64,000 nucleotides of DNA, taken from positions 741,220 through 805,219 of the forward strand of contig NW_005434665.1 of the NCBI RefSeq assembly GCF_000315625.1. Reading direction: 5' to 3'. This stretch comes from Guillardia theta CCMP2712 (taxonomy: Eukaryota > Protista > Cryptophyta). Numbering within the stretch: the stretch's first letter is position 1; every line of letters starts with the position of its first letter. A program made the position numbers and the translations under genes. Of this stretch, positions 8,923 to 62,463 are shown piece by piece. The notes beneath the pieces are model-generated. The model did no database searches. It saw only the letters and a list, made by a program, of their open reading frames with translations, and was not told the DNA's origin.

Positions 8923-9681
8923 CGGAGTTCGCGAACTTTTATATGTATATATAGTTTAAAATATTAAAAGTCATACTGCTGACTGATTGGTACTAGGATA
9001 CGTAGATTGTAAATAGTATTTGTAGATGACCCCTGACATGTATCTGTAAAGTGAGAATTTAAGGTGGTGGGGGTGATGTCAACTTGCTTATCTTAAATTT
9101 GATTGATGTGTACTGATAGGAGTAGTAAACTACTTTTAACTGTAAATCAGATATTTGTTGGATCTGGTGATTCATATCTCTCGTAGAGGGTACAAGGAGG
9201 GGTACTACCATATCGATACGGGGGTGGTCAGTTCGAGCCGTCTATGAAATGGGGGTAGGGGTGGTAAGTTGATTTGGATATCGAGGTAGGGGTAATGATT
9301 ACAGGAGGGGTCTGGTGAAAAAACGGGGGGTGATATAATATGAAAACAGGGGTATACCTTTGCTCAGGCGTTACCGAAGGGGTGGTCAATCATACGGTGG
9401 GTCGTAGGTGGCTTGACGAAGATCAGTTGGTCACTTTTCATGGGCAGTCCAACGCGATATGACCGAGGGTTGTGACGAGAGGAAAGGAAGAGAGAGGAGA
9501 GGAGAGAAGAAAGGCAAAAGAGGATACGATTGTAGAGAGCATTCGTAAGTGAAGAGCTTGTCACTGCTTAGGCTCATTCGAAGGTTGACCGTCGCCGTAC
9601 GGTTGTACCCAGACACCATAAGCAATTCGGCAGCAGATTCACACGAAGATATCTTTGATCGTTTGAACTTGGCGATTAAGA

Positions 9682-12600
9682 ATGCAGATTTTCATTCGGA
9701 GTTATCTCGGAACCATTCCTGTACAGGTTTGTTCAACGGACACCATCAATGAAGTTCGAAGCTCTTTCTTCAACAAAGTTGCTCTACGATGCGATGAGCT
9801 GACCTTAACATGGTATGGAAAAAATCTATCAGGCAGAGCAACCTTGCTCAGCTACGGGATAACATCTGGTGTCACTCTGAACTCAAGAGTCAAACTGTTA
9901 GGAGGAGGATGTGGCGCGAGTACCCCAAAGGACACTCAGGCGCCGTCCCCTAAGAAGCATGTCAATGGGACAAGTCCTGGTAATGCTGTGAAAGCAGGCG
10001 CAGACAATGCAGTCACACCGAACCATGGCAACGGTACGACATCAAGCAACGGCAACGGCACGCCCGCTGTCAAGGGTGGCAACAATGCGACGGCAAAGAG
10101 GCCCTCCCAGGTGGTTGGCTCCAACAGGTTATTTGACAAGACAGGTTTGATTGCCCCTCGAAGAAGTCGAACTCCCTGGAAAGAAGATCTTTCAAAGACC
10201 CTGGATGTCCCCTCCATCCCCTCAGAGCCCCAGGAGATTGATGTCAGCGTGTTGAAGGGGAATCTCTGCGATGGCAAAGCCGTGCAGCATGTTCTGCAGG
10301 ATGAGCGCAAGCTCTTGAAGGTAGCCATATCATCAGCTGGTTCAGACACAGAATGGGAGCGTGCGATCATTGTCGACGACGTCCTGCCCTTCATTATCGA
10401 ATATGCTCGACGAGCTGGAGTCGAAGTCCTTGTTGATGACCTTACTCTGGGAGTACCTGAAGACTTACTGTTTAGTGAAGGCGTGCGAGAAGTCGTGCGA
10501 GCGAGTGTAGACCAGTCTGTCGCCCAAAGCAAGGGCCTGGCATATGTCTTGCTCATCGGGCAGAAATATGGCCATCGACTTTGTCCGCAAAGGATCCCCA
10601 AAGCGATCTTCGAAGATCTGCTGAAGCACGTGGACCCAGCCTCGACGAAGCTGGTCACTGAATCATTTCTGTTGGACACTAACGATGTGCGGGCTGAGAA
10701 GGAGTTCGAGCCCAAACAAGATGAAGTTCAACCTCATTACGTTCTGAAGCTTCGGCCGACACAGAACTCAATCGGCGACATCGGTGAAATCTCTGCGATC
10801 CTTCGAACTGCTGCGTCGAAGCTGTGGAAAAATCAGACATCAAATCTACGAGACGCTAAAAGCCGCCACTGGATCAAGCGATTTTATATCAGTTTCTTTG
10901 AAGAATCGATTTACCATGGGTTGGCATGGATCGATGCCGGTGAGCAGAAGAACAAAGGGATCGTCTATCGCAGATCGTTCAAGTCAATCCCAAGTAATTC
11001 CAAGGAAAGTGCGCAGTATTTAGATATGGGAGCAAAAGGTCAAGACCAGGAGGCAAGCAAAATGTTGAAAGAAATGATTGAGATGGTGCCAGGCAACGTA
11101 CAGAATGTTGCATACAATGATATACCGTGGGACAACAAGGAAGGCATGAACCCGGAGAAATCGAAAGCTCAGGCTGATTACCTGAAAAAGGTGTCAGACG
11201 AAATTTGTACAGCATTGATGACCAGTATTGATTCAGTGGCTAAGCTTCCATCGCTGGGAATCAACTCGCTCTTTGCTGAAGTGAAGCAACACTTGCAATA
11301 TTCACACTTCGTTTCCGAAAAGTACGTTGACAACAAGTCTCAAGGACAATTATTGGCCATACTTCACAAGTATTTGAAGGACCCAATTCCCGGGTGTGAC
11401 AAAGCATTTGTAGCCTTTGGCTCAGGGGGTTGCGGGAAAACTTGGTTGTTGTCTCGCTATGTGCAGCAGATCATGACTGAGTCTTTTGACAAGAAGCCCG
11501 CAGTAGTTTGTCGCTTTGTAGGACTTACACCGGCTTCTTCCTCAGTCGCACCGCTTCTTGCTGGTATTTGCCGTCAGATTGCTGTCATCTATGGCAAAGA
11601 GGACGAGCCAGTGCCAGCAAACCACCTGCAAGTTGTAGAGTACTTCCACCGCGCCCTTGCTTCCTGGCCGTCCCCGGAGAAGCCGCTGCTGTTAGTCATC
11701 GACGGTTTGGATCAATTGGAGGACAACGATGCCGCCAGACAGCTCGACTGGCTGTCGCTGAGTGGACTCAAGGTCGGCCTGAGGATCATCGTGACAACGG
11801 CCCCGGACTCCCCCGGGATCAACTGCCTGACGACCATCAAGCGAAAGCTCAAGATCTGGGGCGGGTCTGTTTGTCACACCATCGCTGAAGTCCCAGTCTA
11901 CACTGAGGAGGATGTGCAGACTGTGCTGGAGGGCAAGCTGAAGGCTGCCGGTCGAACTCTCACAGCTGAACAGCTGGAAGCGGTGAAGAGCTCGTTTCGC
12001 GAGAAGGACTCTGCAGAGAGGTCGTCCACCCCCATCTGGATTGCCCTTGTGTTCCAGATTGTGCGGAAGTGGCACTCGTATGATGGAGTGGTGCAGAAGA
12101 TTGATTCCTCCATGATGGAACTGAGCAACTCTTACTTCTCGCTGTTGCAAGACAGGCACGGTACCTACCTCACGAAATCTGCTCTCTCCTACATCAGCCT
12201 CACCAGGCACTATGGGATATCAGAAAACGAGCTCCGGCAGGTGTTGTCATGCAACGACGACGTGATGTCAGAGATCGGATCGTTCCGTGTGATCAACTCA
12301 TCCCCTCACCTGTACCTGAAGCAGATCTTGTATGAGTTGGAGCCTCTCCTCTACCAAGTGAAGGACTCCAGACAGAGCTCTTCGCCCTACTTGTGGATGA
12401 ACAGGTTCTACGGTCAGGCTGTGGAAAGTTGGTTGACCGCGACTGAGGAGAGGCAGAACATGAGGAAACTTCTTCTCAAGGATCTGGCTGACCATTTCCA
12501 TGGCACTCACGCGTTCCAAGTCAAACCCTACGAGAATAATCTGCAAAGGGTCCTCCAAGACATCTTCCCAGGTGAGAATCTTTTCTATTCCTCTGATCCT

Positions 12601-15012
12601 GCCTGCTGACTCAATGCTCCAGGCGAGAATGGCAACGACAGGAGGACGCTCGACCAACCCGTGGCTTTCAACGGCAGCGTCACGGACGTCAGCGGGCAGC
12701 CGTTGGTCCTCAACCATCGCAAGTTGCAGATGTTGGTCCCGCTGCTGATCTGGTCGGCGGATGAATCGCGGACCCTCAAGGAGATTTTCTCAGTTGAATA
12801 CATCGCAGCAAAGTTCCATCTGAATGCTGGTCAGGAACTTCTGAATGAGATGAACCTGGCCATCTCAACGTTCCCTGCCTCTGCAGAGAAGCTGCTGTCG
12901 TTCAAGAGCCTTGTGCAAGTGAACAAGGAGCATTTCGCTCAGCCTATGTGCTCCGTCATCCCCTTCCAAGTGATGTCCCAGGAGCCGGACTCTTCCGAGG
13001 TCTTTCGAACCTTCCAGGAGTTCTTCAATGTCAACAAGCAGCTCAACATCTGTCACTGGCTAAACAAGGTGCAAGCAGAAGGACCTCTCGCTGTGTTCAG
13101 CCATCATACCTCTCCCGTCAGCACTGTGGTCGTCTCGCCATGTGGAAGGTTCATCGCCTCCGCAGCCAGGGAAAAGTTCTTCACCGTCTCTTCGCTGCAC
13201 ACTGGCGAAGTCTCGTTCCGATCCATGGAGCACCAGGGCGAGATCACGAGCTTGGCCTGGTCTCCAGATGGCCTGGTGATCGTGGCAGCTTCGCGGGATG
13301 GGACTATCCGCCTCTGGGATGCCAACGGCGGGTTTCAGGTGGGGTCGGTGCTGAGCGGTCACTACGGGGAGGTGTGGAGTGTGGCGTTCAACCCTAAAGA
13401 CTCCAACGTGCTTGTCAGCTGCGGAAAGGACATGTCTGTCCGCATCTGGGACATCAGCCGGGCCTGCTGCCTGGGGAACCTGCGCAACAGGCACACGCGC
13501 AAGGTGAACAGCGTGACCTTCAGCGTGGACGGGAAGGTTGTGGCCACGGGATCCGACGACTCAAGCATCTGCTTGTGGAGCGCAGACACTGGGCTCTTGA
13601 TGGGAGAGCCGCTGACTGGGCACGAGGAGGAGGTGACCTCTGTCGCCTTCCACCCTTCGCATTACCACGTGCTGGCGTCTGGCTGCGCCGACGGCACGAT
13701 CAGGTTCTGGGATACGCGGGATAGCTTCCTGATCGGAGAACCTCTCGCTGCTCACGATGGGAAGATCTCTGGACTGGCCTTCAGCCCAAAGGTGCCTGAC
13801 ATGCTTGCGTCGTGCAGCAACGACAAAACGATCAAGTTTTGGAGCCTCGAGAAGAGGACTCTTCTGTTTCCTCCCCTCCAGGCGCATGTCAGCTGGGTCA
13901 ACAGCATCTTCTGGACGCCCAAGGGGGAGCGGCTGGTGAGCGGGAGCCGAGACAAATCAATCAAAGTCTGGTCAATGCAGATGATGTCGGATGCTCAGAT
14001 GCAGGGCCACAAGCAGGGCATCAACAGCGTAAGGTTCAACTCCGGGAGCCCCCACGTGGTCGCCACCTCGAGCTACGACAGGACAATCCAGCTTTGGGAC
14101 GCGGCGACGGGAAAGAAGAAGGGGGAACCTCTCCGGGGTCAGTCAGGGTGGCCCGGGTCGCTCGTGTGGTCGCCTACAGCCTCACTGCTGGCGTCCGGCT
14201 CCGACAACAACGACATCAAGATCTGGACGGTGGAAGGAGAAGTGAAGGCGAACCTGAAGGGCCACCGCATGGCCGTCACCTCCGTCGCCTTCAACCCCCT
14301 CGACGAGAACATCCTCGCGAGCTCCAGTGTGGACAAGACCCTCCGCCTGTGGGACATCGCCTCTGCCTCGCAGGTCGGGGAAGCCATGGAGGGGCATGAG
14401 GGCTGGGTGCTTGCGCTTGCCTTCCGCCCCAGTGATGCTGCGACCCTTGTGAGCGGAGGATCAGACAAGGCGTTGAGGGTGTGGAATGTAGCGGATCGCA
14501 AGGAGGTAGGGAAGCTTGAGGGACACAAAGATCGAGTCATCAGCATCGTCTTCAGCCCGACAGACCCGAACATAGCAGCCAGTTCTAGTGCAGACAGGAC
14601 GATAAGGCTGTGGAACACGAGCACGATGGAGGCGGTGGGGAAGCCGCTGGAAGGGCACAAGGCGTTCATCAATGACGTACAGTTCGCACTGGATGGGGAG
14701 ACGATCGTGGCAAGCAGCCGAGACCATGCCATCTTGCGATGGAGTTGTAAGACAGGGGAACTGGTGAACTGCCTGCTCAGAGGCTCGATCGTTCAGGTTG
14801 TGAAGACGGTGACATCGACGTCCAAGATAATAACTTGTAGATCGAATGTGATGTATGTATATGACATGTTGGACGCGGAGGCCGGGCGATGCAGGGCGTG
14901 CTTCAAGGCTTCGTCGAACATCGTGGCCATCGACGTCTCTCCTCCTTTCATCTGCCTCGGAGGCGCTCAGGGAGAGGTCTACCAATTGAGGTGTGACTAC
15001 CTTGTAAGGTGA
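9682..15012 (+). CDS. UBL-[GCGAS]-DUF4062-like-NACHT-WD40 protein (NWD1/TEP1-type STAND NTPase), 1,759 aa, one intron 12572-12622
   Basis: Ubiquitin-like N-terminus MQIFIRS...KLLGG. DUF4062-like KVAISSAGSDTEWER. Walker A GSGGCGKT and Walker B LLLVIDGLDQL. About 13 WD40 repeats. A 51-nt GT-AG intron with a CTGAC branch site joins the two ORFs in frame. Confidence 0.92.
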
Positions 15013-16321: not shown

Positions 16322-19300
16322 ATGTTCCATCATCACATGGAGGACTCAGGACACAGCAGTGACGATGAGATAGTTTTCATGGAAGATCCTTTCAGAGAGA
16401 ACGAGACTCAGCAGGAAAGTCGGTTCTTTGACTCTACAAACATAGGCAGCAGCATCTTGAACTCGCACCATAACAGCAGAGATGAGGAGTTCTTCAGAAG
16501 CTTGCCGAGACAAGGCATGGAGGAAGGGCATCATGATGATGGGTTGTTTGAGGACAACTCATGGCAGAGGAAGTCTGCAAGTCTGTTTGAGAAAGCAGCG
16601 AATGGAGAAATCCAAGATCTCTTGGACGAGCTGCCGCCCCCAGACGAGTTTGACTCCTCCTACCTGTCCACTCACAACAGCGAGGAGCAGAACTTTTACC
16701 CACAGAGAGATCGTCTGGATCTTCCTTCCTCCTCTGCCTCGCATGGCAGTGGCATCGCTATCAGCGGTATGCATCCCGGGTGTCGATACGAGTGGACAAG
16801 AATGCACGGGGAGCAGAGCAGGGGGGAGCCGTTGATGGTAGCGCCGCCGTCTCTCGCTGAGCAACTGGACACAACAAGAGCACTCTTGAGAGCGAAGGAC
16901 AGAGAGCTGAACAAACAGTCAGACATGATCAGGAGTCTGGAGGATGAACTAGCAGTCTGCAGAGCGGCCATCGGCGAGCGAGAGCAAAGTTTGCTCGAGC
17001 TGAAGTCGTCGTACGATCATCAGATGCAGGAGAGGAGGAGGCTGGAGGAGAGGCTAGAGCACACGAATGTGACAGTGGAGCGGTTGAGAGAACAGTGTGG
17101 GAGCTTGCAGACGGAGCTCGACAAGTCCGACAAGACGATAGACGAGCTTCATGCCCGGATCCGAAGTTTGCAGACAGGGGACGCGGTGATGTCGGGGGAC
17201 ATGTACGAGCACCACCTGAGCGCGTACAAGGAGGAGATGGAGCACACCCGATCGCAGATGGAGGAGTGGAAGAAGCAGGCGAGGGAGCTGAGAAACATCA
17301 TCGACGAGCAGACTACACAGGAGATGCACCTGACAGGTTTGACAAGGGCGATGAGAGATGCGGCTTGTCAAGTCGAAGATGAGGATGCCGGCATCTTGAA
17401 GAAGGTGGATGGTCAGGATGGCAAGGAGGAGGAGGAGGAGGAGGAGGAGGAGGAGGATGTTGGGGTCAAGACTTCACTCATTGCGCAAGTTCGTGCGCTG
17501 GAGTGTGAGGTTCAGCAGTTGAGACATGAGTCGAAGATGAAGAAGAGCGGGGAAGTGGAGGAAGAGAGCAGGGAGAGAGCAGACAAGGAAGAAGGAAGCA
17601 GAAGGGATGGGAAGTCATGGATGAAAGAGGTGGGGGAGGAGCTGAAGAAGCTGGAGAAGTTGAACGTCGAGCTGGTGTCTGCGAACAAGGAGCTGATGAG
17701 CGCAAACAAGAAGCTGCTAGAGCAAAGCAGGAGAGAGAGAGAGAAGAGCAAAGGAAAGGCGGACTTGGCTGGTGAAGAGCAGCCCCAGCAGGCGAAGAGG
17801 CTGGAGAAGGAGAGGGAGGAAGGGGAGGAAGAGGTGAGGAGGAAGATTGCGGTGGCGCTGAAGGAGCAGGAGACCAGGCTGAAGGCTGACAAGGAGGACG
17901 AAATCAAGAGGCTCCGGACAGCATGGAACAAGCACACGCAGGAGTCCGTACGAGCAACGGAGGAGCGCTGCACGAGAGAGCACAAGGAGGAGTTGAGGAG
18001 GACGAGGGGGCAGAAGCTGGACCAGACGACGCAGTCCTGCCCCGAGCAAGTCCATCGGTCGTCGCAGACATTCGCGGAGACGTCGCTGCCTCCGATGAAG
18101 AGACTTGAAATGAAGGAGGAGGGACAGGGAGTGGGGCCAGGTGGGGGCCAGGCGTGCGAGAAGGCGCCAAGGGAGGGAGAAGTGGAGAGAAGGGAAGAGG
18201 AGGTGAAGGAGGTGAAGGAGGTGAAGGAGGTTAAGGAGGTGAAGGAGGTGAAGGAGGCGAAGGAGGTGAAGGAGCAGGCAGAGGAGGTCAAGGAGAGAGT
18301 CAAGATGGTGTTGGACTTGGATTGGGCAAGCATCGGCGATCTTCCTCTCTTCTCTCGAGAGCTACAGAAGGACGTGGCATGGGCCGTTGGGATCCGCGAG
18401 TCGCGCGTGAGGGTGGAGGAGGTGAAGGAAGGGAGCGTGCTGGCGATTCTCTCCTTCCTGCCAGCTGCTTCACCCGAGGAGAAGGAGGCGGAGGAAGTGA
18501 TCCACGAGCTCGAGGAGCAGCTGGCTGCTGACATCAGCAGCCTCAAGATTGGCATCCAAACAAGGCACCTGAAGAGGATTGAAAGGATCTCCTCCTCCTC
18601 TTCCTACTCTTCCTCCTCTTCCTCCTCTTCCTCCTCTTCCTCCTCTTCCTCCTCCTCTAAGTCGTGTGATCCATCACTTCGGCTGGGAGAGAGGAAAGAA
18701 GGAGGAGCGAGGGAGGCAGAGGAGATGGGAGAGACGAGGAAGACCAGGACGTCCATGGATGTTAACTGCCAGCATGAAACCGCAGAGGAGCAGGAGGGGC
18801 TGAAGGACGCAACACGCGGGGAGGAGGAAGCGAGGAGGAGGGAACTTGAGTCGGACAAGGATGCCGTGAGGAGGATGGCGATGATCAGGAGGATGGAGGA
18901 GATGGAGAGGCTGAGGGAGGAGATGGAGGAGGAGACGCGGCGGGCGATCGACGAGCTGAGAGGAAGGATGGCTGCGGAGATGCAGACACGGCTGGAGCAA
19001 GTGAGAGCTGAGACGAGGGGAGAGAAGGAGCAGGAGGAGGCAAGTGCGAGGGAGGAGGAAACCTCTGCTGAGAAGGAAGTGCAGCTAATGGATCAAACTT
19101 GCCAAACAGAAGAAGAGCAGGTCAATGAAATTTCGTGTACCAGCGCAGCATGTCAGACGGAGGAGGAGGAGGAGGAGGAGGTCAAGAGAATGGAGGACGC
19201 TGATGTGCAGTGCTCGATCGAAGTCGACCTGTTCATCGCCAACAATCGAGATGAGTACATGGAACGCCTGCGGGTGAGGAGGAGGAAGAGGAGGGGTGGA

Positions 19301-22300
19301 GGGGGGGGGGAGGGGGGGGGACGGGGGGGGAGGTGCGAGAGAGCTGAGAATTTTGACGGAGACGCAGGCATCGCTGGAGCAGAGTCTGGAGGAGGAGACT
19401 GAGAGGATGAGAAGGTCCATGGAGCAGAAGGTGGCGTATGAGCAGAGCAGGCAGGAGATGACGATGAAGCATGCGATGGAGGATGAGGAGAGAAGGTTGG
19501 AGGAGAGGTTGGAGGGGGAGAGGGCGCAGAGAGCCAAGGCTCTGCGGGCCGAGGAGGAGGAAAAGCTGAGGAGGGTGAGGGAGAAGCTGGTGGAGGAGAG
19601 GAGGACAGCATCGAAGCAGATCATCGAGGAGGCAGTGGAAGCGAGCAAGAAGATCCGAGAACAGACTGTGAGGATCTTGGAGGAAGAGTTCGGCAAGGAG
19701 ATCAAGTCAGCCCGCATCCTGCACGCGTGCCAAAGGAGGAAGGTGCTTGCGGAGATGGAGGAGGAGCATGCGGCAGAGATGGAGGAGGAGGTTGAGGAGG
19801 CGAGGAGGGAGCACGAGAGGATGAAGAAGGAGAGGATGAGGGAGATCGTTCATGCTCATGAGGTCGAAGTGCAGAGGATGGAGGAGGAGCTGGAAGAGGT
19901 CATGCAGAAGAGGATCGAGGATGTGAAGGCGACGAGTGAGAGGAGGCAGGAAGAGGAGAGGAGGAGGGTGGAGCAGCGGGTGAAGGAGCTCATAGACCGG
20001 CTGAGGAAGGAAGCTGAGGAGGAGGAGGAGAAGCTGCAGATGCGCTTCGAGGAGGAGCGGGAGCGGGCAAGGAGGAGGCACCATGTTGATGTGGAGGAGA
20101 CGATCCGGGAACTGGAGGAGGTGAAGGAGGAGCTGATGGAGACGGTGAGGAGGAGGGTTAAGGAGAGCTGCGTGCTGGACGGGGTACAGCTAGAGGAAGA
20201 ATCCCTGCTGCTCGTAAGGCAGCAGCTGCAGGAGTGGAAGGAGGAGACGAGGAGGCAGACGTCGCAGGTGCTGGACGAGTTGTTCCGCAAGAACACGGAG
20301 GAGGAGGTGGAAGAGCTGGGGGCGCTGAGGACGCAGCTGTCGCAGGAGAACGAGGCTGTTGTGAGTGCCTTGCTGGAGAGCTTGTGCAGGTGGGAGGAGG
20401 AGGAGAGTTTGCGGCTCGGCCGGCAGCTGGAGGAAGAAAGGAGGAAGGCGATGGAGGACGAGGAGAAGACGCACCAAGAGAGGATGGCCAGGGCAATGAA
20501 GGATGTAAGGGCGGAGATTGAGGAGGCGCAGGAGCGGAGGAGGAGGGAGCTCGTGCAGGAGGAGGAGGAGAGGGCAGAGAAGGAGCTTCAGAGCATGCGC
20601 GGGAGGCACGAGGAGGAGCTGAAGGAGCGGCTGGGGGAGATGGAAGCAGAGTTTGAGAGGAGCCTGCAGGAGGCACTGACCAGGAGGGTGCGGGAGCTGC
20701 GCGGAGCTCATGAGGAGAGGATGGCGGAGGTGAAGAGGCGGCTGGAGGAGGAGCGAGCGAGGAAGCTGGAGGAGGAGGAGGAGGAGTCGAGGAGAAAGGC
20801 CAAGGAGGAGACAGACAAGCTCAGGTCGCAGCTGGAGCAGGAGACGGAGAGGAGGAAGAAGTCGACTCAGGTGGAATGTGACGATCTGTACGACAAGAAG
20901 ATATGGGAGCTGGAGCTGCGTGCGGAGGAGGAGCTGGAGGAGAGCGTGAAGGAGCACAGGAGGAAGGAGGAGGCAAAACTGGAGCAGGAGCTGCGGGCTC
21001 TGGAGGAGGAGCTAATGAAGGAGCGGGAGCGAGAGCTGGGCTCCATGAGGAGGAGGGCAGAGCAGAGGCTGATGAGGCTGAAGCAGGAGATGGAGGAGGA
21101 GTACGCAGGGGAGAGGCGCGAGGCGATGCGCAAGGTCAGCAGGGAGGTGGAGGAGGAGAAGAACTCGCTGCTGTCGAGGAGGATGCGAGAGATCGAGAAC
21201 GGGACGCAGGAGCTGCTGCAGGAGCTGCAGGCAACGAAGGAGGAGGAGCAACGTGCGACCCTGAAGGAGCTGGAGGAGAAGCTGAGGGGGGAGCTGGAGG
21301 CGAGCACGAGAAAGAAGCACGAGGAGCTGAAGGAGGAGGCACATACGGCGATCGCTCGGGTGCAGAAGGAGCTGCTGGAGAGGAGGGAGCAAGTGCTGCG
21401 GGAGGTGGAGAGAGAGTGCGAGGAGGAGCTGAAGCGGGAGAGCAGCAGGATGCACGACGTGTTCCTGACCTCGAAGCGCGAGAGGATCGACGCGCTGGTG
21501 CAGGAGCAGAGGGTCGAGGAGGAGAGGGAGCAGCAGGAGCAGGTCCTGCGGGGTGAGCTGGAGTTGTCGAGGGAGGTGAACGCGCTCAAGGAGGAGTGCA
21601 AGGCAGACGTGGAGAGGATGAAGTCGCTGATGCGCGAAAGGTTCTCCGACGAGCTCAGGAGGATCTGTACCAAGGCGAGGATACGGAACTTTGCCAAGTC
21701 GTGCGAGCAGAAGAGCGCCAAGGGCTGTGCCGTCGAGCAGAAGGGAGAGAGCATGGCGAACAGGTTGCGGCAGGAGTGGAAGGAGCAGTTGCGGGAGCTG
21801 ATGGAGGGCTGGGAGGAGGAGGAGGGGATGTTTGCCTCCCTCCTCAGCCAGCTGGAGGCTGTGGAACAGACGCTGAGCACGATGAGGGCTGTGTGCGGGG
21901 GGAGAAGCTTCAAGCCAGCCGAGGCGACGTACAGCTCCCTGTGGACGAAAGTGGTGAGGGAGAGCCGAGCATTGCTCTCCTCCTCCTCCTCCTCCTCCTC
22001 CTCCTTCCCCGAAGAGGATCGGACTGCGGGACTAGAGCGCAGCATGCAAGAGCTTCTCTCGCTCTTTCTCCCTGCGCCCTCGCCCTCGCCCTCGGACGCA
22101 GACCTCAGCATGTCCTCGACGGTTCCTGCCACAACACCGGCTGCAACGCCCTCCAAGTCGACGCCGGGCAAGGCGCGCAGGTTCCACATCAGCCCTGCCC
22201 CCTCCAGCGTGAGCGCCTGCAGCATGACTCCTGTCCTCGCGTCTCCTGGCTCATGGGGAGAGAGCGCAACGTCGCCTGATCGCATCCTCCTGGACATGTC

Positions 22301-22709
22301 GCTGGAGCCTGGGGACTGGCAGGAGCTGGAGAAGACGCAGCGACGCTACGAGGACGCGGCCAAGACCCTGAGCAAGCGGCTGACTGACGTGCTCTTGCTC
22401 GTCCGTGAGAAGTCTTCGTCGCCTGCCAAGTCGCACGATCGGTACGAGGAAGAGAAGAAGGGAAGGCACAGAGTGTCTCGAGCTCTGTTTGCAGAGGGGA
22501 AGGAGGGGGCAAGCGAGAAGGAGAAGGAGAAGCAGAAGGAGAAGGAGGAGAAGGAGAAGGAGAAGGAGAAGGAGAAGGAGAAGGAGAAGGAGAAGGAGAA
22601 GGAGAAGGAGGGAGAAGGGGAGGAGGAAGATTTGTTTTTCACGAAGCTAATGCGCTCTAGTGCTCGGAAGAGTTTATCGAGGATGCTCATGACATCCAAG
22701 CAAAGATAA
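16322..22709 (+). CDS. Very long E/R/K-rich coiled-coil protein (2,097 aa), possibly centrosomal (weak CEP152-like resemblance); intron 19274-19367
   Basis: Two large ORFs are joined in frame by a G-rich 94-nt GT-AG intron. Acidic N-terminus, a QLDTTRALLRAKDREL segment, and extensive heptads. Confidence 0.8.
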
Positions 22710-33895: not shown

Positions 33896-34104
33896 CCTTG
33901 CAGTTCTCGTCTTCTTGGACACTGCCCCCCCCCTCCCTCCTCACCCTTCGTCGTCGCCCCTTCGTCCTGAAATTCCACCTCGCGCATTTTTCTATTTTTC
34001 TCCCCGATAGAAATTTACCCTCATCCCCCCATAGACCAGCAGCCCTCATCCCGCCCATACGTCGCCCTCATCCCCGATCAGCCCTTGAGGCGACCCTTCG
34101 CGCT

Positions 34105-34896
34105 ATGTCGCAAGAGGGAGGGGGAGGGAGCGGGCAATGGCTCAAGGATGCGGAGGCCTGGGTGGAAGACAAGCGGCTGAAGCCATCGACCTTTGCTGCA
34201 GAGTTCATCGGTTCCTTTCTCTTTCAGTTCTTGGGGGGTTCTGCCGCTTCCAATGCGGTGGATGCAGGGCTCACGACAGCGGCCCTCGGCAATGGTGCGG
34301 CCCTGGCGCTGCTCGTGTATTCGATGGCAGGCATCAGTGGAGCGCATCTTAACCCGGCCGTATCTACTGCCATGCTCGTCATCGGTGAAGATGACATGAG
34401 CATCCCGAAGTGGGGAATCTACGTTAGCATGCAGCTCTTCGGCGCTCTGATGGGGGCTGTGTTCCTGCGGTACCTGTGCCCGGACACGGCGGTGGTCCGA
34501 AACCCTTTTGTCACGCAGGGAATTCTCAACGAGGGAGTGAGCAGGAACTTGGCGGGGCTGGGGATCTTCGAATTTGTCATGACCTTCACTCTCGTGTTCG
34601 TGATCTGTGCGGTGGCTCTGGACATGAAGTCAGGGGCCAGGCAGTATGGGCCACTGGCTGTTGGCTTCGTCTATGCAGCCGGCGTCTACTGTGAGGGGCC
34701 GTACACTGGGGGAAGCATGAATCCAGCAAGAACTATCGCAGCTGCTATAGTGTATGCCAATTTCACGGGCATGTGGATTTCAATCATCTGTGTGATGATC
34801 GGAGGCGTAGCAGGTGCATTCTGCTACAAGCACTTGCTCAGGATAGAACATAACCCTGCAAATTCACGCGACTTCTCTGCATCGCGTTACGTTTAA
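34105..34896 (+). CDS. Aquaporin (MIP family), 263 aa, intronless
   Basis: AEFIGSFLF, ISGAHLNPAVS, GGSMNPAR and six hydrophobic helices. Confidence 0.95.
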   Translation: MSQEGGGGSGQWLKDAEAWVEDKRLKPSTFAAEFIGSFLFQFLGGSAASNAVDAGLTTAALGNGAALALLVYSMAGISGAHLNPAVSTAMLVIGEDDMSIPKWGIYVSMQLFGALMGAVFLRYLCPDTAVVRNPFVTQGILNEGVSRNLAGLGIFEFVMTFTLVFVICAVALDMKSGARQYGPLAVGFVYAAGVYCEGPYTGGSMNPARTIAAAIVYANFTGMWISIICVMIGGVAGAFCYKHLLRIEHNPANSRDFSASRYV

Positions 34897-40294: not shown

Positions 40295-42121
40295 TCACGA
40301 TTTCCTCGCTCTCTTGCTGCTCCCGGCTTCCCCATCCTCTTCTGTGGTCCTCTTGCGAGAAGGAGCGGCGTCCCTGTACAAAGGCATCAGCAGGAGGCTC
40401 CTCTAGCCAACTATGGCATACATGATCTCGATATCGTCATCATCGTCCTCCGCTGCTCCTGTGTCACCGCTCGGCTCCGCTCCACCCTGCTGATCCCCGT
40501 TTGGAGCAGCAGCCTCGGCCTTGTGCGAAACCTCGTAGGGACGCTCGCCCTCAGGGTCGAGCTCCTCGCTGAGAAAGAGTGAGTGTAGAGAGAACAAGAG
40601 GATGGAGCACCTGTGAACGATCAAAACCTTCATGCTTGTGTTGCCCTGCGTCTCATCCTCGATGGAAAGAATCATCTGATCGCTGATGCCAATGCTTGGA
40701 TCCGTCAAGGGCAGTTTGAGCCTCTTCTCCATGGCCACTTTGTCCGCCTCAGTCTCAAAGTTGGACAGGCACTCGAAGAAGTTGGCTCCTGTGTCGACGA
40801 GAGGCTCGTTCAGTCCCAACTCTTGCTTCAAGATCCTCGTCAAGAAGAAGTTGAAGGTCGTCTTCTCCACGTTCAGCTTCAGCGACACCGTGCCTCCGCT
40901 GCAAACCGTACACGCACGGTTCGGCAAGTCGAGGTTCGAGGGGATCAAAATGTACCTCTTCCTCCCGCTCGGCTCTCTGTTCTTCATGATCGCCCTACAA
41001 TCCCCAAGTCTTCCCTCTAGCACCTTAACGGCCTCCAGCACCATGGCTCCAGAGATGATCGCGTTGGTTGTGGCAATGGCGGGGATGATGTTCCCAGCAA
41101 TCTCCTTGCACCGGAACCTGGTCTGCATGTCGATCGCGAAGACATGAGCCCTGAGGTTGCTGGCAGCCAAGACGAAGTTCATGATGACATCATCATCTTT
41201 GTCCCATTCCATCACACCCTCCTCCTTCGCCCTCGCTTGCAATTCCACATAGCTCTCCTTGAACAGCGCGATTGTTTCCTCCAATGACAGCACCGTGGTC
41301 TCGGCAACCTCAGACCCCCTGTTCGCCTGCTCCTGCGTCGCAACGAGTGTGAGAGGAGTTGGAGGCTTCCTGCTCTCCCACAGCTCCGCCATCCCGATCA
41401 GCTTGTTGATCTCCTCTACGAAGACTTTCTCCAGTACCTGATGCGAGTCCAGCTCGGCGCTGATGCCCTGCACGACCTCATCGGTGTCATCCTTCGGTCC
41501 GAACAGCATGTTGAAGAGGTGCTTCCCCCACACGATGCAGTGAACCGGCTTGTCCGGTGTGGACCGGATGGTGCAGACCGGAAACCCCTTGGGAGCGGGC
41601 TTCGGCTCGCAGTCGTAGCATGCGCTAACACCCTTCTTGATGGTTACCACTTGTCCATCGTACCCTTGCGTTCCTCCGTCGATCAAGATCTTTTCCTGGT
41701 GGACACAGATCCTGCTCACGTGCCTGCGGGCCTCCAAGTTGTCCAGAGCATTGAAGATGATGTCGAATCCGTCCATGTAACTCGGTCCGAACCGCTTCTC
41801 CTTGATGTTCCCATGGTGAGCGATGATGTCCACGTCGGGATTGAACCTCTTCACGACCTCAGCAGCGACGTTCGCCTTGCTTTTCTTCACGTGCTCCTTC
41901 CTGAACAAGAACTGCCTGTTCAGGTTGCTCACGTCGATAGTATCCAAGTCCACCACCTCGATCTTCTTGAAGCCTGACAGCACGAGGACTTTGAGGAGCT
42001 CACAACCGATCCCACCAGCTCCCACCACCAAGACCTTTGCTTCATGCAGCCTCTTCATCGCCTCTGCTCCTCCTCCCATGGCCTCCATGGCCTTGCGCAA
42101 ATGTTCCTCCCTTCCCGCCAT
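40295..42121 (-). CDS. UBA2: SUMO-activating enzyme subunit 2
   Basis: VGAGGIGCELLK, DLDTIDVSNLNRQFLF, catalytic FPVCTIRSTP and AGNIIPAIATTNA. The spliced C-terminus is an NLS-like RKR...KRARKS ending at TGA 40295-40297. Confidence 0.95.
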
Positions 42122-43195
42122 GGCTGATCCTTCGATTCCCCGTGCTCTGTCGATCATGGGGGTCATTTGAACTACCCTAATTATTCCACAGGAACTGTCA
42201 TCGTGACGTGGTAGGGTGTATGACCCCACCCCCTTCCCCTCTTTCCCAGAGTTCCTGGTTCAACCAGCCAACCTCATCGCCCCCACACACAACAGAGAAA
42301 CTGTCCCTCATCCCCTCCCTGACCCAACATGAAATCCTTCCTTTCATCCCCCTCATACATATTATGAATATATGGAGCTTATTATAAGATTATGAAGAAG
42401 TGTTATAATCTTGGTACCCCTTCCCCGCTCATGTCCAAGTTTCCCGAAATAGCTCCGATACCCCACCCCCATTTCATTATTCATGGACCCTCGAATATTA
42501 CATAGACTAGTAGAACTGCTCGAATGGATCAACGGGGGTATGAAATCGCATTACCCCTCCTGGGACCATACGAAATCGGACATAGGACCTGGTACTAGAG
42601 TCCCTTGAGCTACACCCCTACCCCTACTTCTCTTTAAGTTATTATTGTACATAGTGGTAGGGGTCCTCACTTCTATTTCCGGAACCACTGCAGATGTAGG
42701 TGGTACGTAGGGTGATACTAGAAAGGGTACTTTGTAGGGGAATACGGGGGTAATACGGGGGTAATAAGGTTGATGGAAAGGGCAGGGGTATGTGAAACAC
42801 TACACTGTCTGAAATGGGTTGGTGGGTGGTATTTCAAGTATGGTACAGGGAACACACGATCTGGGAAACTTAGGGTACTTTACTATAGGATGATGGGGGT
42901 AGTGATGTTGATATTATACGAATGGGTAGGTGTAGTAAGTGTCAAAAGGAGGGTAGGGGGGTAGTTGGAAGGAAGTGGTATAAAAAGCAAGAGGAACGAA
43001 GGGTCAACCATAACGAGGTGAGACATGTGAAGGGGCATGGCAGTTCAGACAAGCATTTGTATGCCCGAATATGCTGCGCAATGAAAGAAACACAAGGAAT
43101 CAACTTTGTGGATTCTTTCGTTGAATGTGACATGTGTTCATTTTGATTTTCTTGTATCCAAATCCATGTTTCATGTTTCTGATCTAGTTTATCAG

Positions 43196-46457: not shown

Positions 46458-48298
<1,841 letters not shown>

Positions 48299-48873: not shown

Positions 48874-51800
48874 AATCGTCCCCTCGTCTCTCCATTCGCT
48901 TTATCCACGTCAACCTCTTTCCGATCTTCTTCATCCTCGTTTGCGTTGTCGTTCCCTGTCTGCCGCAGCGCTTTCAGTGGCTTTACTCGGAGCAAGCATC
49001 ACGGACCTTCTCCTGCTCCTGCTCGTCGTCATCCTCCACCTCGCCATGGATCGGAGGACTAGGTGCTGCCCTGTCCATCTCCGGCTCTTCTTTGCCTCTT
49101 CTCTCGACCTCGTCCTCCTCGAGCAGCTTCGACTCATGCTGCGGCTGTTCAGGATACGGGAGAGCCCTCGCACCTCTCTACCTCGTCGCTCCTCTCCGAC
49201 CCTGAGTCGGAGACCGGGCGTGTGATGTCCTCCTCGTTCATGCCTGCAGCCCACTCACGACTCCTTCCTCTCCATCCCTTCTCGTGCCCACTGCCTCTTC
49301 TCGTTCTCTACCCCTTCCTTCCTCCTCACCAGAACCCCTCGCTCACCCTCCGCTCCTGCTCCTTCCATTCACGACCTCCTTACCTGTGCCCAGGTTGGTG
49401 AAGTCTTCAAACATCGTGCTGGGGGCATCGAAGGCTGTGTCGTCGAACCTGGAACGATCTCGTAAGTATTCACATCAACGGAAAGAGGGAAAAGGGGGAA
49501 GGGGAAGGGGGGGGGGGAAGAGGGAGGAGGGAGAGCGGAGAGATAGAGAACGGAGGAGGGGGAGAGAGCCAGGGAGGAAGGGGAGAGAGGAGGGGGGAAA
49601 GGGGAGAGAGCGTGAAAGGGGAAGGAGGACGACAACAATATCGAGGGGAAGGAGGACCTCGAGTCATCGTAAACGTCTCTGTCTGTCAAGTTTCCTTCCG
49701 CATCAAGTCGCTCCAGTAGTCTCCCCCGCTCGCTCATCGTCGGCCCGACAGCGCTTCCGTCCTCTACCATTATCTGCTTGTAAGCTCGCCGCATACTCGC
49801 GATCCTCTCCTGGATCGAGCCATGCACGTCCTCCGTCAGGTCCTCGGCTGTAGACTCCATCCCCACCTGCAACATCTCAGCTAGCAGCAGGGGGCAGAGC
49901 ACGCGGCACCTCCACCAGGGGAGGGAGCTTGGCGTCGAACTGCTTCCTCCTGTCCGATCCGTTCCTCATCCTCTCACGGAACCTGTAGGCCGCCAGCTTC
50001 ATGAAGTGCTCCACCCGCTGCTCCGTGCTCCCTGCTGGAGCATGCGGCAGCCTCGGCGTAACCAGCAGCCCATTCTCTCCGTCCTCGACTCCGTTGTCCT
50101 CCGCCTCCTCATCCCCGCTCCCCCAGCTCGCGTCCGCCTGCCTCCGAGCAGAGTTGCGAGCTGGAAACGGCATCTCCGTGGGGGCCAGCATCCTCGAGGA
50201 GAGCAGCAGCTGGGGCCCGGCCTCAGAGCCTGGAGCCCTGGGGGTGGCAGATACAGAAGTCCCTCCCTCCTGGAGCTCGCCGAAGATGTCGGGGTGGTGA
50301 GACGCGTAGAAGTTCTCAGTGTTGGTGAGCGACAGGTCCGTCTCCTCCATCTCCCTCCTCACCAGCTGGTCCAACTTCGTCTTCAGCTGGTTCGCCCGCG
50401 CCTCCTGCTGCGGAAACCGCTGCTCCGCCTCCTCGAACTCGGCGGACGCGGTCTCGAGCCGAGAGGTCTTGAGATGGATGCTGTGCATGTCAATCTTGAG
50501 CTGGCGGAGCATCTCGCGGACCAGCTGAAGCTCAGCTGCCTGCTCGCGGAGCTTGCATCGGTTCTTCCAGACGAGGAGGTTCACCATCTCATGCTCGAGC
50601 TGCTCAACGAGGTACTTGTAGTCGAGGAAGCTGTTGGAGCAGAAGAGCACGGACTTGCAAGCCTTGCTCAGCTCCTCTGCACAGTCGGAGATTTCCAGGA
50701 TGGGCTGCTGGTGGACATCCTTGTAGCCGAGGATGTGCTTCCTCCTCTCCCTCTCGCGCGACCGCAGCTTCAGCCCTATCGCGATGCTGACGGCAACGAT
50801 GACGACGGCGAGGAGCGAAACCCCAGCCAAGAGGCCAACATGCCGCTGGGCCCAGGTGGAGCAGACCAGCCACTTCTTCTGAAGGGAGGAGACGCCTTGC
50901 CCCACCTTCAGAGAGACGTTTGCTCCCGTCAGCTCCTCCCCGATGGCGAGCGGATTGACGGGGCAGAACCCGACGACAGGAAAGGGAGGGAGGACGGTGT
51001 GGTTGCAGTAGAGCTGACCCTCCCGCTGGTTGATCCAAGGGCTCCCGATGCTGGGGCAAGAGGAGGAAAGCATTCCGCAGTAGGACAGGGAGAAGGGGTC
51101 GAAGCTCTGGACGGACGAGTCGCTGCGAGCTGCAGTGATGACAAACAGAAAGAGGTTGGTGCCCAGCACCTGGCCTACGTGGAACTCAGCTGGGTAGATC
51201 TGAGTCAAGAGGCCGGAGAGGACCCCCCCTCTGCTTGACAGCAAGCTGGAGTTGAACGTGTAGAAGGAGCCCACAAACATCTCAGCAGTCTCGGAGATCC
51301 TCCGATTCACGAGAAAACCAGCGAGGAAAAGCTTCTCCGCCATCTCCCCGTAGTAGTCCCCGAAGAACAGCTCTGTCTGCGCGCGAGACGACGGGGTCTG
51401 CGCAGCGATCTCCTCTAGCCAGGAGGGGGAGCTGTGGGTGATGAAGTACCCCTGATCATCTGTCAGGAAGAAGTCGAACGGAACCGGCTGCGTCACAGCT
51501 CGAGAGAGAGCTTGTCGGATGGACGAAGACAGGTCGGACAGCCCGAGCGACATCCCCACCAGCCCCGCTGGCTCATCTCGCAGCCCCGACTGGCCAGACG
51601 TTGAGGGAGAAAGGAGAATCGGCACAGAGATCACGGTCTCCAGCAGGGCCCCTCCCCAGCACCCTCCTGCACAGGTGTGCGGCCTCGAGACCGTCAAGCT
51701 CCCGTCAGACATGACAGACTGAGCAAACCACATCTCGTCCGCTGCTGAGTAATCCTTGGGGATGTATCGACCTGGCCAGACCCCGTACACTCCAGACCGG

Positions 51801-54067
51801 AAGGCGATGACGGCTGACTTCTTCCCTCCCCCGTCTTGGTTCCACGAGGTCACCTTGAGCTCGGACGCCAACACTCGCGCGAGCGAGACATCCCTCATGG
51901 CTTCGAACGTCATCCCATCTCCAACAACATTGCTGCCTTGCACCCCACCAAGGTAGACGAGAGGATCCTGCAGGGAGCGGTTGATCCATTGGTTGATGCT
52001 CGCGACCTGCTCCGCGCTCTCACTCTGCGCCAGATACTTGAAGGCGTTGAGGAACGACGAGGCTGCGAGCTTCACCGAAAACGCCCCAGTGGAGAAAGTC
52101 TTCTCCTGCTCCTGCACCATAGAAACTCCCAGCTGAACCAGGGCTGACGGGTCGGCAAACGTTGCGTGATAAAGCATCGCGGCTGCTGGGACTTGGAGCT
52201 TCGACCATGCAGCGTAGGGGGCAGTCATGTTGTTGAAGGAGAAGTCGAACTTGTCAACAGTAGCCGAGCTCTGAAGGTCAGCCAGGATGTAGGACACGAA
52301 GCTGGTGCCCGGGACTCTCTGCCAGCAGAAGGCGACGGAGACATTCACCTCCGTAGTGTAGTAGACGAGTTTCTTCTTGTTGACCGTGAGCCACTTGAGC
52401 AAGGTGAGGGGAGTGCGATCTACCCTCACTACCGCACATCCTTGCGTCACAGTCGCTGCCCTCTCAAAGAGGGAGAAGGAAGACGCTGAGGAGTCGCCTT
52501 CCACTCTGTTTGCATCCAGTGGGAGGTAGACCCCTGCTTCAGCAAGCTGCACCACGAGGGGATGAAAGAAAAGTTTGAACGGCTTGTCCCTCATGAAGAC
52601 ACCCAGGTGATAGTCCTCGTCGGAAGTCTCTGCAAGATCGGACAACTTGGCCACGATGTAGTCAAAGTTGAAATCGATCGCAACGACACCTTGGAAGTCT
52701 GCATGACCACTCTTGTCTGCGGTGACTATAGGAGCCGACATGGTGTAGACACATTGCTGAGAGCTGCAGTTGGGCAACATAGAGCCCTTGTGCTGCTCGT
52801 CGAACTTGAGAAGCAGAGACATCATATCCATCACAGGATTCAGCTGGCTTCGCAGAGCTGAGAAGTTCCCATACGCTTCGACCTGAACGTAGAGCCCTTG
52901 GTACTTGCAAGCCAGAGTTGAACAGAAATTGCAAGTGGTCGAGCCCAAGGAGATAGTGAAGACCTGTGCAAAGAGCTGCTTCTGGTACGGCTCGATATCA
53001 TTCAAGGTCTTCGTCGCTTCGGTTGTCGTAACGAGCCCGTCCGTGATGAGGAAAAGCATTCTGGAGCAGTTGCGCGAGTAGCCTTGAGCTGCACTGTTGC
53101 GAAACAGGTCCCAAGCCTGAGTGATCGACAACTCCAACAGGTGAGTTTGCAACTGCAGCTCCTTAACGACCACTTGCTTCAGAAACGACATCAAGATGTC
53201 TCGGTTCGCTCGGGTTGCAGGTATCAACAGGCTGTTCGACACACAGGGGCTCAACTTGCCCGACACGATGAGCTGCAAGGAGTCATCCGGGGAGACAAGG
53301 CTCAACACGGCATCCACCACTCCCACGATCATCTCCGAAGCACGTGGTATTGAGACGGACAGGAAGGAAGACACGTCAATCACAACCACGACGTCTTTGC
53401 TGATCGAGGCAGCGCTTGCGAACCATTGGAAACCTCTTCCGTCCTGCTCTTGGAAAGTGGAATACCGAGGATCCGTCCTTTGAACAGTTGAGATCGTCTC
53501 CCCGATAGAAGACACAAACGTCACAGCTTGTATGTAAGGAGCTTTGATCGTTCGGAAATATTTCGATAGGCTCGAGTACAGGAGGCAGCTTTGTAGTTGT
53601 GGTCGTGACTGTACACTCTCTGCACTTGGCGGGAAGTTGACGAGAATCGAGGAATTGTCAAACGCGCAAGTGCTGTTCTGACTTGTTAAGCTGTTTTCGA
53701 TCAAGGACTTGACGATGCTGGAGATGTTTCTGAGTGAAGTCACAATGTCTCCAAGAACAGATGCGTACGCCTGAATCGAAAACTTCTGAACGCGATCAGG
53801 CAGGCTCAGAGTCGAAGTTGTGGATCCACCATTTGAATTGATCGTATCAATAACATTCTGCAGGCTTGCGCTCAACACACAATCCTTGCCCTTTGCCACC
53901 TTCAGGTAAGTACACGCCCACGTTGAGAGGGTTTGCTCTACCTCCCTGGTCATGTTCATTACCTGTCTACTCTGCAACTGAAAGCCATGACCTTCTGCCA
54001 GTAAGAGTGCCAGCAGGGTGAGAAGGAGACACTGCGCTGGCATCTGGCTCTTCAGTCTCTTCACCAT
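48540..54067 (-). CDS. VWA + Cache type I membrane protein (alpha2delta/CACHD1-like) with long cytoplasmic tail
   Basis: Signal peptide, KDVVVVIDVS, LFLITDG, Cache-like YSAADEMWF and FFLTDDQGYFITH, and a TM helix LLAGVSLLAVVIVAVSIAIGL. A ~4.1-kb first exon is followed by small exons ending LKLEIDDD*. Confidence 0.8.
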
Positions 54068-60677: not shown

Positions 60678-62463
60678 CTAAGAGTCGGAGTCCGATGATT
60701 CGATGATGCCCACCTTGCTGCCCGATGCTGCCGTCGGGGTCGGGGCCGGTGATTCATCCGAGGACGACGACGACATAATGCTTTCGTTTCTCCTCGGAGT
60801 TGATTGAGAATCGTCATTCTGCTGGCTCTCCCCTCGCTTCTCCCTCTCCGCTTCTTGATTTCCATCTGCCAAGCTCTCCCGTCCCAGATCAATTCGCTTC
60901 TGTTTCAGGGCCTCCTGCTCCTCCTCAGATAGCTTCCGAAGCTGCGAGAAAGAATCACAATAAATCATCACATCGGGGTTCAACAAGAGCAGAAAACACA
61001 ACAAGATGCAACAAGACAGAAGGGTGCTTCACCGTTTGAACTGCTTTCAAGTACGACGGGAATCTCTCCTTCAACCTGCGAGAAATCCTGTCTGGACCGT
61101 CGAGATCCCTGCAGAAGCAAACTTCAGCATTGCAGTGGAAGAGAGCATAACGAAGGAAGCTCACATGATTGCCGAATGGGTGAGAATGTCTTTGCGCTTT
61201 CTAAGATAGGTTCGATTGTGAAGCGGATGATAAAATGCACATCCCGAATTCTCCCCAGTTTTCTCCACGAAGGCCACAACGAAGTGGTCATCATGCCACT
61301 CCTCCTGGTACATTCGTGCCTGAGAAGATCAAAGGATGAGTAGAAAGCTACAACAGCCGAACGGAAACACTCACCTCATTCTCGCAATACTCTCGAAGAC
61401 AATTGAACTCGGTGACTTTTTCGTCCTCATCTTCATCCATCTCATCATCGGCATCATCACCCCGCTGTGGAGCAGCAACCACATTCAGTCGGACGCATCG
61501 GTCAGGATACTTCACACTCAACCTTCGCCATCTTCTTCCGTCGTTTGCTTTCAGGAGCAGGCAGCATGTAAGCAAACGTACGATCATTCGCCTGCAGATA
61601 GTTAGACTGGAGACAGCCGAGTGTACGATTACATGCTGCATCGAGCGCCCAATGTTGATGAAGGCCGTTGATGCCAAAGTTGCGCGATCTGCCATTGAAG
61701 TATTCGCTGCCTTCGGGTCGTCCAAGGTAGGATCTTGGTCGAAAACAAGCTCGGTATAATCGTTGGGCCAGCACTTGGTATCCGGTAGGATCTCCCAAAC
61801 CTTGGTGGCCACGAGATCCGGGTTTGTTGGATGTTTGAGGTCTTCGAGCTTTCGGGACAGTTCGAAGGATTTCTCGATCTTCTCTGCCAGCTGCTTCGGC
61901 GTGAGCTCCTGAACGTCCTCTTGGATGGGAACAGGCAGTTGAACTTGGGGTTTGTGACCTTGCTGATAGTCATACAAATCCTCATTGCCATAGTACGCAG
62001 TCTTGTGCAGCCAAGGCACATTAGGCCTCTCCTTGATATTGATGCGAAGGTTGGACCTGTTTGTTTCGACCTTCTCCCCTTCAAGAAGATATTTATCCTC
62101 TGGAAGCAGCGGGGCGCCGTTTGACGGCGGCTCGTAAGTTTCCGGTTCGATAAGATCGATGTGTATCCCCAGGTTCGGCTCCGTGAGCAGGCTGTACTTG
62201 AAGTTCTTCTCCAGGGACGTGAACGAGTACGAAGTCAGCTTCTTTACATCCATCTGGCTCGCCAGGAACTTGGGCTCGAAGGGTAGCTCAGGAAGGTCGT
62301 TCCTGAACTTCATCTTAGAGATGAAGGTGTCGGCTCTGGACCTCTTGGTGAGCAGCGAGTGATCCTCTGCTAAGTTGATCGGCGCTGCATCGCCCTTGTT
62401 CGGCGCCTTCCTGCTGTCCTGCCCAGGCTGCCGCGCGTGCGACGACGTCGGCCGGGCTGCCAT
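60678..62463 (-). CDS. PAF1: RNA polymerase II-associated factor 1
   Basis: FISKMKFRNDLPELPFEPKFL, TSLEKNF, LGIHIDLI, VPWLHKT, IEKSF and KHPTNPDL..WEILPD, with an acidic tail. Confidence 0.9.

Follow-up and report, generated by a model that had tools for sequence, protein, structure and literature searches.

Is a large STAND protein of the cryptophyte Guillardia theta made behind a ubiquitin-like cap whose removal would expose a lipid anchor? The question is posed by a forward-strand gene (9682-15012, with start codon ATG at 9682 and stop codon at 15010-15012) in a 64,000-nucleotide (nt) stretch of contig NW_005434665.1, here called the window. An initial annotation had described the product as an "NLR-like NACHT-WD40" protein, synthesized as a precursor in which an N-terminal ubiquitin-like domain (UBL) would mask an N-myristoylation and palmitoylation signal. 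Comparison with transcripts, with a second cryptophyte and with the wider protein family supports the UBL as a genuine descendant of ubiquitin with an aligned di-Gly at its end, and the residues after it are most simply read as the family's own acylation N-terminus. On balance we incline towards constitutive or near-constitutive cleavage of the cap, with acylation of the glycine so exposed.

A ubiquitin derivative in front of an NWD-type core

The spliced gene product has 1,759 amino acids (aa) and the N-terminus MQIF. It is encoded by two open reading frames (ORFs; 9682-12609, 975 aa, and 12661-15012, 783 aa) that are joined in frame once a 51-nt intron is spliced out. Transcript contigs from two RNA-like runs of two independent RNA studies (X3, 5,571 nt, beginning at 9432, and X5, beginning at 9496) lack precisely these 51 nt, are otherwise collinear with the window and run from the 5′ untranslated region (UTR) through the UBL. 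Run X1, which retains the intron, probably represents genomic DNA. The reading frame has a TGA at 9664, 18 nt 5′ of the ATG, and no start upstream, and the first internal methionine comes only near aa 470, so that the UBL cannot be skipped through another start. An upstream exon or alternative start is ruled out by the transcript contigs together with this stop, as is a transcript or start codon that leaves out the UBL, which the initial annotation had named as a finding that would speak against it. Its coordinates for the di-Gly (9901-9906, codons GGA GGA) and for the GCGASTPK that follows proved exact.

The best match to the protein (P0001) is a transcript product of Hanusia phi, a cryptophyte of the Geminigeraceae, with 1,758 aa and 76% identity, in which residues 1-963 of the window protein align to residues 1-964. 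The Hanusia transcript likewise has an in-frame stop 18 nt before its MQIF start, and its start therefore also includes the UBL. An assembly or annotation artefact, or a chimera, has next to no probability as the origin of the fusion: the sole point in its favor is that the protein is missing from the databases searched, and it is ruled out by the collinear contigs of the two RNA studies and by the same fusion in the independent Hanusia phi transcriptome.

A phmmer search of the PDB aligns residues 1-75 over their whole length to ubiquitin 1-76, M1 and G75-G76 included, with one 1-residue gap (E 5e-8 to 3e-7 for mono-ubiquitin); the pairwise BLASTP alignment has 31% identity and scores 40 bits. 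The ubiquitin family model PF00240 scores the window protein at 24.4 bits, just below its cut-off of 25.4, and the Hanusia ortholog at 26.2 bits, above it. A tblastn search of the window with a ubiquitin unit missed the UBL at E values up to 10, indicating strong divergence, although phmmer and BLASTP still detect it. F4, a leucine at the position equivalent to Ile36 and Leu73 are retained from ubiquitin. The sequence comparisons thus support the reading of residues 1-75 as a divergent ubiquitin domain, as first annotated. Structure prediction, which had been suggested as a check, agreed in part: AlphaFold2 (AF2), given an alignment with ubiquitin rows, returned a beta-grasp fold for aa 1-72 with a predicted local distance difference test score (pLDDT) above 90 and, from aa 74 on, disorder (pLDDT below 50), whereas with only the two cryptophyte rows the mean pLDDT fell to 48 with a similar order of secondary-structure elements. 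The top Foldseek matches to the model built with ubiquitin rows are ubiquitin (template modeling score 0.82-0.90, normalized to single-ubiquitin chains). The fold assignment rests mainly on sequence homology because the confident model leans on those rows.

Downstream of the UBL, the domain order is disordered linker, DUF4062 (TIR-like), NACHT, winged helix-turn-helix and WD40. The Pfam match to DUF4062 is weak (E 0.022, aa 213-299), yet the domain aligns throughout with its homologs. An exhaustive HMMER search returned 4,407 homologs, with E values down to 1e-118 outside the ortholog, and the named ones are annotated as "NACHT and WD repeat domain-containing protein 1/2-like". On its domains and homologs the window protein is therefore an NWD1/NWD2-type STAND NTPase; the NACHT-WD40 STAND assignment of the initial annotation stands, and "NLR-like" was too broad.

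According to three preprints of 2026, DUF4062 is a TIR-like NADase domain (NIR or TeTIR) that occurs in NWD1, NWD2, TEP1 and NPHP3, and NPHP3 is reported to be without the catalytic glutamate (bioRxiv 10.64898/2026.09.21.753143). In 23-24 of 26 aligned sequences the domain keeps its near-invariant positions: F in SSTF, R and W in the RWG loop, C and E in ICLxE, another Cys, and an E in SVTExE. They are replaced in the window protein and its Hanusia ortholog, the only two of the 26 in which this is so, and the substituted TIR-like active-site residues read G, T, L, V, S in the former and A, T, L, V, S in the latter. Both positions that we take as candidates for the catalytic glutamate (in ICLxE and IPAxEF) are non-acidic in the window protein; a PDB sequence search with the DUF4062 region gave no match on which that glutamate could be mapped to a solved structure. 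The TIR-like domain is thus probably a pseudo-enzyme, reminiscent of NPHP3.

The junction and the N-termini of the family

In both cryptophytes the UBL begins at Met1, ends in a di-Gly aligned to ubiquitin G75-G76 and is fused directly to its partner. The residues that follow, G76-C-G-A-S-T-P-K, fit the N-myristoylation consensus G-{EDRKHPFYW}-x-x-[STAGCN]-{P}, with a cysteine adjoining the glycine as for dual acylation. Cleavage is predicted between G75 (9904-9906) and G76 (9907-9909), and the P1′ residue, Gly76, is not proline and is the same in Hanusia. A six-frame scan of the whole window for two hydrophobic or basic residues followed by GG-G-x-x-x and a small residue found this junction as the sole site in a real gene context. 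The order di-Gly, GCGASTPK, disordered linker that had been described earlier is borne out by the sequence and by the AF2 disorder.

Could the acylation motif have been inherited from the family? Among the 149 other homolog cluster representatives, 140 start with Met, and 17 of these 140 begin MGxxx[S/T] with an allowed residue 3, while 13 begin MGC. Internal methionines in this set show the two patterns at rates of 0.46% and 0.07%, respectively (binomial p ~4e-19 and ~1e-23, values that are overstated, since the representatives are related and the MGC starts are not phylogenetically independent). The start MGCGASKK of a Fabomonas protein (P0052) is nearly identical to the GCGASTPK of the window, and comparable starts occur in choanoflagellates (MGCSHSKE, MGCNQSVE), in Cyanophora (MGCRYSK, MGCCKSK) and in molluscs and hemichordates (MGCGPS, MGCANS, MGCGGS). 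In homologs with such a start, Gly2 lies 49-276 aa N-terminal of the first DUF4062 strand, and Gly76 of the window protein lies ~137 aa from it. Because MGCxxS starts recur and the spacing to DUF4062 is comparable, the simplest reading is that the GCGAS after the di-Gly is the ancestral acylation N-terminus of the family, with a ubiquitin unit in place of the methionine. The earlier identification of G-C-x-x-S as a dual-acylation N-terminus accords with both the consensus fit and these distant starts.

Starts of the form MGCxxS or MGSxxS are frequent in NWD1/NWD2-type proteins in their own right (among P0012-P0116), occurring in an ancyromonad, choanoflagellates, a glaucophyte, molluscs, hemichordates and an echinoderm. 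Acylation of the N-terminus thus seems to be a widespread and little-noted trait of the family, and a literature search for NWD1 together with myristoylation found no paper. The observation is timely given that the DUF4062 of this family has newly been described as a TIR-like NADase.

A UBL was found in none of the other 149 homologs with hidden Markov models of the UBL and of ubiquitin, so that the cap appears to be lineage specific, that of Guillardia and Hanusia being the sole one with a UBL among the 150 cluster representatives. Searches for further cases added none. A word-indexed protein search with the 963-aa product of exon 1 gave no match, its length band and low-complexity words having probably hidden relatives, and searches of the same kind that started from Hanusia aa 1-210 or from a two-sequence profile of 300 aa recovered polyubiquitin-like proteins only and no further UBL-capped relative. 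A scan of metagenome contigs with the alignment of the UBL gave 81 pattern matches, 0 of them confirmed; a degenerate DNA pattern for LLGGGCGASTP matched metagenome contigs 4 times, always by out-of-frame chance in GC-rich contigs; and a feature search of a protein atlas with aa 1-210 gave no usable match.

The window protein and its Hanusia ortholog share 56-66% identity within the UBL, 52-62% across the linker and ~80% elsewhere. Among the first 200 residues the longest stretch free of differences is LLGGGCGASTP (aa 72-82), which spans the predicted cut site; 11 of 11 residues are identical and 5 of 11 codons differ synonymously. By our own calculation, at ~58% local identity, an 11/11 match at one given place has a chance of ~0.003. 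Synonymous sites are saturated (proportion of synonymous differences 0.6-0.73), the nonsynonymous divergence (dN) of the junction is 0 and the nonsynonymous to synonymous ratio (dN/dS) of the UBL is ~0.13, which indicates that the UBL is selected and not decaying. Because of these values and the 11/11 identity, the UBL and, more strongly, the junction are under purifying selection at the protein level. The initial annotation had named a lack of conservation of GG|GCxxS in homologs as a finding against it, and the junction is instead fully identical in this ortholog.

Selection on the UBL, together with its intact GG tail, would also suit a released UBL that is itself the functional product, a free modifier such as ubiquitin or FUBI for which the NWD protein is a mere carrier, and natural genes for ubiquitin and ubiquitin-like proteins are indeed commonly fusions. 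We regard this as highly improbable. A STAND protein of 1,684 aa is hardly a credible carrier, evolution of the UBL is 2.5-3 times faster than that of the NACHT part, and the acylation motif conserved behind the GG indicates that selection acts on the N-terminus downstream of it.

Proposed cap removal and lipidation, and the alternatives

The favored sequence of events would begin in the ancestor of Guillardia and Hanusia, where a ubiquitin coding unit would have replaced the initiator methionine of a protein that already started MGCxxS. A deubiquitinase (DUB)-type protease would cut after G75, probably constitutively and early, as in ubiquitin-ribosomal and FUBI-eS30 fusions; the newly N-terminal G76 would be myristoylated by N-myristoyltransferase (NMT) and C77 palmitoylated. 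The protein would then be tethered to membranes through its ~130-aa disordered linker, with the NACHT-WD40 part acting as a ligand-controlled oligomerizing switch. That the cap is removed and Gly76 still exposed is suggested because a myristoylation signal needs a free N-terminal glycine and yet is strictly kept behind GG. The capped precursor with a hidden lipid anchor, as initially proposed, thereby gains comparative support from the ubiquitin derivation, the MGCxxS starts of the family, the conserved junction and the transcripts.

Each component of this scheme has a precedent. Caspase-cleaved BID, actin, PAK2 and gelsolin are N-myristoylated post-translationally on a glycine exposed by the protease, and there too NMT can act on an internal glycine followed by its consensus only once an endoprotease has exposed it. 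They differ in that the window protein would involve a DUB-type enzyme acting on a ubiquitin fold, probably constitutively, and would expose the ancestral N-terminus of a family and not a cryptic site. Fusions of ubiquitin type, namely FUBI-eS30 (FAU), Ub-eL40 and Ub-eS31, share with it an N-terminal ubiquitin-type domain, an MQ[IL]F start and a di-Gly fused directly to the mature protein; their partner is a small ribosomal protein, in contrast to the 1,684-aa STAND NTPase with an acylation-signal N-terminus and predicted processing considered here. FUBI is the closest comparison, being 36% identical to ubiquitin, with the tail RMLGG and a required di-Gly that is cut by USP36 and USP16 (PMC8354635, PMC10611586). 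The UBL of the window stands at a similar distance from ubiquitin (31-38%), with a K/RLLGG tail, but FUBI keeps Leu42 at the position equivalent to Ile44, where the UBL of the window is polar.

Several points weigh against cap removal. The Ile44 patch used by most DUBs is lost, with L8>Y, I44>T and V70>R in the window protein (Y8, T43, R69) and Q, T and T in Hanusia, and the tail VKLLGG replaces the LRLRGG of ubiquitin (Arg74 to Leu; [KR]LLGG in both cryptophytes), so that general DUBs may not accept the UBL. Recognition by them is consequently uncertain, and a dedicated protease, conditional cleavage or an absence of cleavage are all conceivable. To these points may be added the low confidence of the structural model built from the cryptophyte rows, the relatedness of the MGC-starting representatives, and the small sample behind the junction, whose conservation is that of one pairwise comparison between two sequences of one cryptophyte family. 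STAND proteins, moreover, often have permanent N-terminal adaptor domains.

The UBL could accordingly be such a permanent, uncleaved domain (a type-2 UBL), serving as adaptor or effector of the STAND protein, with LLGG-GCGAS a linker conserved for other reasons or by chance. The missing Ile44 patch and the change of R74 to Leu would agree with this, and purifying selection on the UBL is what a functional domain would show; other NWD homologs carry varied N-terminal modules, including PH, kinesin and ankyrin/LamG. We nevertheless consider it unlikely, if a serious contender, given that integral UBLs usually lose the di-Gly, which here aligns exactly to ubiquitin G75-G76 in both species, that the junction is the best-conserved block of a fast-evolving region, and that the residues after the GG reproduce an acylation N-terminus of the family that would be functionless unless the glycine were N-terminal.

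Conditional cleavage is a further alternative, in which the UBL would resist general host DUBs and act as a tripwire, a dedicated host protease or a pathogen DUB or ubiquitin-like protease (ULP) triggering lipid anchoring and activation. A UBL surface far from that of ubiquitin combined with a retained [KR]LLGG tail is suggestive of this, though only suggestive, and FUBI illustrates that divergent UBL fusions can require specific ubiquitin-specific proteases. The initial annotation had raised both a dedicated host protease and a role as bait for pathogen DUBs, and the bait reading finds no support here. We judge conditional cleavage improbable: the sequence bears no sign of regulation, no linked protease gene was found among the large ORFs of the window, and the apparently inactive TIR-like domain fits a scaffold better than an immune executioner. 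Its fuller form, in which infection or another signal would, through a dedicated host protease or a virus-encoded deubiquitinase or ULP, turn a soluble NWD protein into a myristoylated and palmitoylated membrane platform for oligomerization, is a shade less probable still.

If, as we favor, the cap is removed early and the exposed glycine acylated, the mature protein would more likely be a membrane scaffold, as NPHP3, than an NADase, because its TIR-like DUF4062 has lost the conserved active-site residues. NWD1, NWD2, NPHP3 and TEP1 share with it DUF4062, NACHT and repeats, and many members start MGCxxS, but among the 150 cluster representatives a UBL stands in front only in the Guillardia/Hanusia lineage, and in the 26-sequence alignment the F, RW, C and E of the TIR-like domain are lost only there. 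NPHP3 is reportedly a myristoylated cargo of UNC119B. In plants, too, coiled-coil NLRs such as RPS5 are STAND receptors that a myristoylated and palmitoylated N-terminus holds at the plasma membrane. The window protein would resemble these in its predicted acylated N-terminus; they belong to the unrelated NB-ARC lineage, and their acylation signal directly follows the initiator methionine without a cap.

The mechanism would be assembled from known parts, and it is a narrow case confined so far to two cryptophyte species. If cleavage and lipidation do occur, ubiquitin-fusion processing, proteolysis-dependent myristoylation and the membrane targeting of STAND or NLR-like proteins would meet in one protein, and we know of no earlier natural ubiquitin-type fusion that replaces the methionine of an N-myristoylation and palmitoylation signal. 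In a targeted, incomplete literature search we did not find the combination of a ubiquitin-type cap before a dual-acylation signal on an NWD-type STAND protein with a degenerate TIR-like domain. The case would also illustrate, in evolutionary terms, how a ubiquitin unit may enter "silently" at a start codon, the mature N-terminus being restored by DUB cleavage.

Features of the gene and its surroundings

The features of the gene are collected in Table 1. Two short upstream ORFs (ATG at 9440 and 9459, 11 and 29 codons, within 9440-9548) are present in the longer 5′ UTR of X3 and not in the shorter one of X5.

Table 1. Positions in the window of the features of the UBL-capped NWD-type gene
Feature	Position	Strand	Remarks
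5′ UTR	9432-9681	+	From transcript contigs; two short out-of-frame upstream ORFs and in-frame TGA 9664
Ubiquitin-like cap	9682-9906	+	aa 1-75, MQIF...KLLGG; full-length ubiquitin homolog with polar residues at the Ile44 patch
Junction block LLGG-GCGASTP	9895-9927	+	aa 72-82; same residues in Hanusia phi, 5 codons differing synonymously
GCGASTPK	9907-9930	+	aa 76-83; fits N-myristoylation consensus; Cys77 is a palmitoylation candidate
Low-complexity linker	9931-10296	+	aa 84-205, predicted disordered; conserved RTPWKEDLSK at 10168-10197
DUF4062 / TIR-like (NIR, TeTIR) domain	10297-10971	+	aa ~206-430; near-invariant F, RW, C, E, C, E replaced
NACHT / NPHP3_N NTPase core	11347-11814	+	aa 556-711; Pfam NPHP3_N/NACHT match at aa 577-711
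Walker A GSGGCGKT	11419-11442	+	aa 580-587, intact
Walker B LLLVIDGLDQ	11686-11715	+	aa 669-678, intact
HTH_NWD1 winged helix	12088-12360	+	aa 803-893, Pfam
Intron	12572-12622	+	51 nt, GT..AG; absent from two transcript contigs
WD40 region	13078-14862	+	13 repeats, two propellers, Pfam

Of the sampled words of 9400-10600, 44% were present in a freshwater metagenome and 14% in a lake-water metagenome, which is unexpected for the marine Guillardia theta.

No DUB or NMT gene was found among the large ORFs of the window. An E1-like gene lies 30 kb from the UBL-capped gene on the reverse strand (40406-42229) and encodes ThiF, UBA_E1_SCCH and UAE_UbL domains, as in an activating-enzyme subunit of SUMO/NEDD8 type; we take its proximity as coincidence. 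At 16322-22709 on the forward strand, the products of two overlapping, very long ORFs (1,026 and 1,137 aa) are rich in E, R and K, resemble coiled coils and have no Pfam match; they show strong purine skew (GC skew up to 0.45) in their coding sequence and include six VKE units in a run and then a closing AKE unit. A 1,396-aa ORF on the reverse strand (49880-54067), also with no Pfam match, has the signal-peptide-like start MVKRLKSQMPAQCLLLTLLALLLAEG. Ordinary neighbors include an MIP aquaporin (33898-34893) and a KH/BBP-type RNA-binding protein (46458-47330) on the forward strand, and Paf1 (61351-62463) on the reverse strand.

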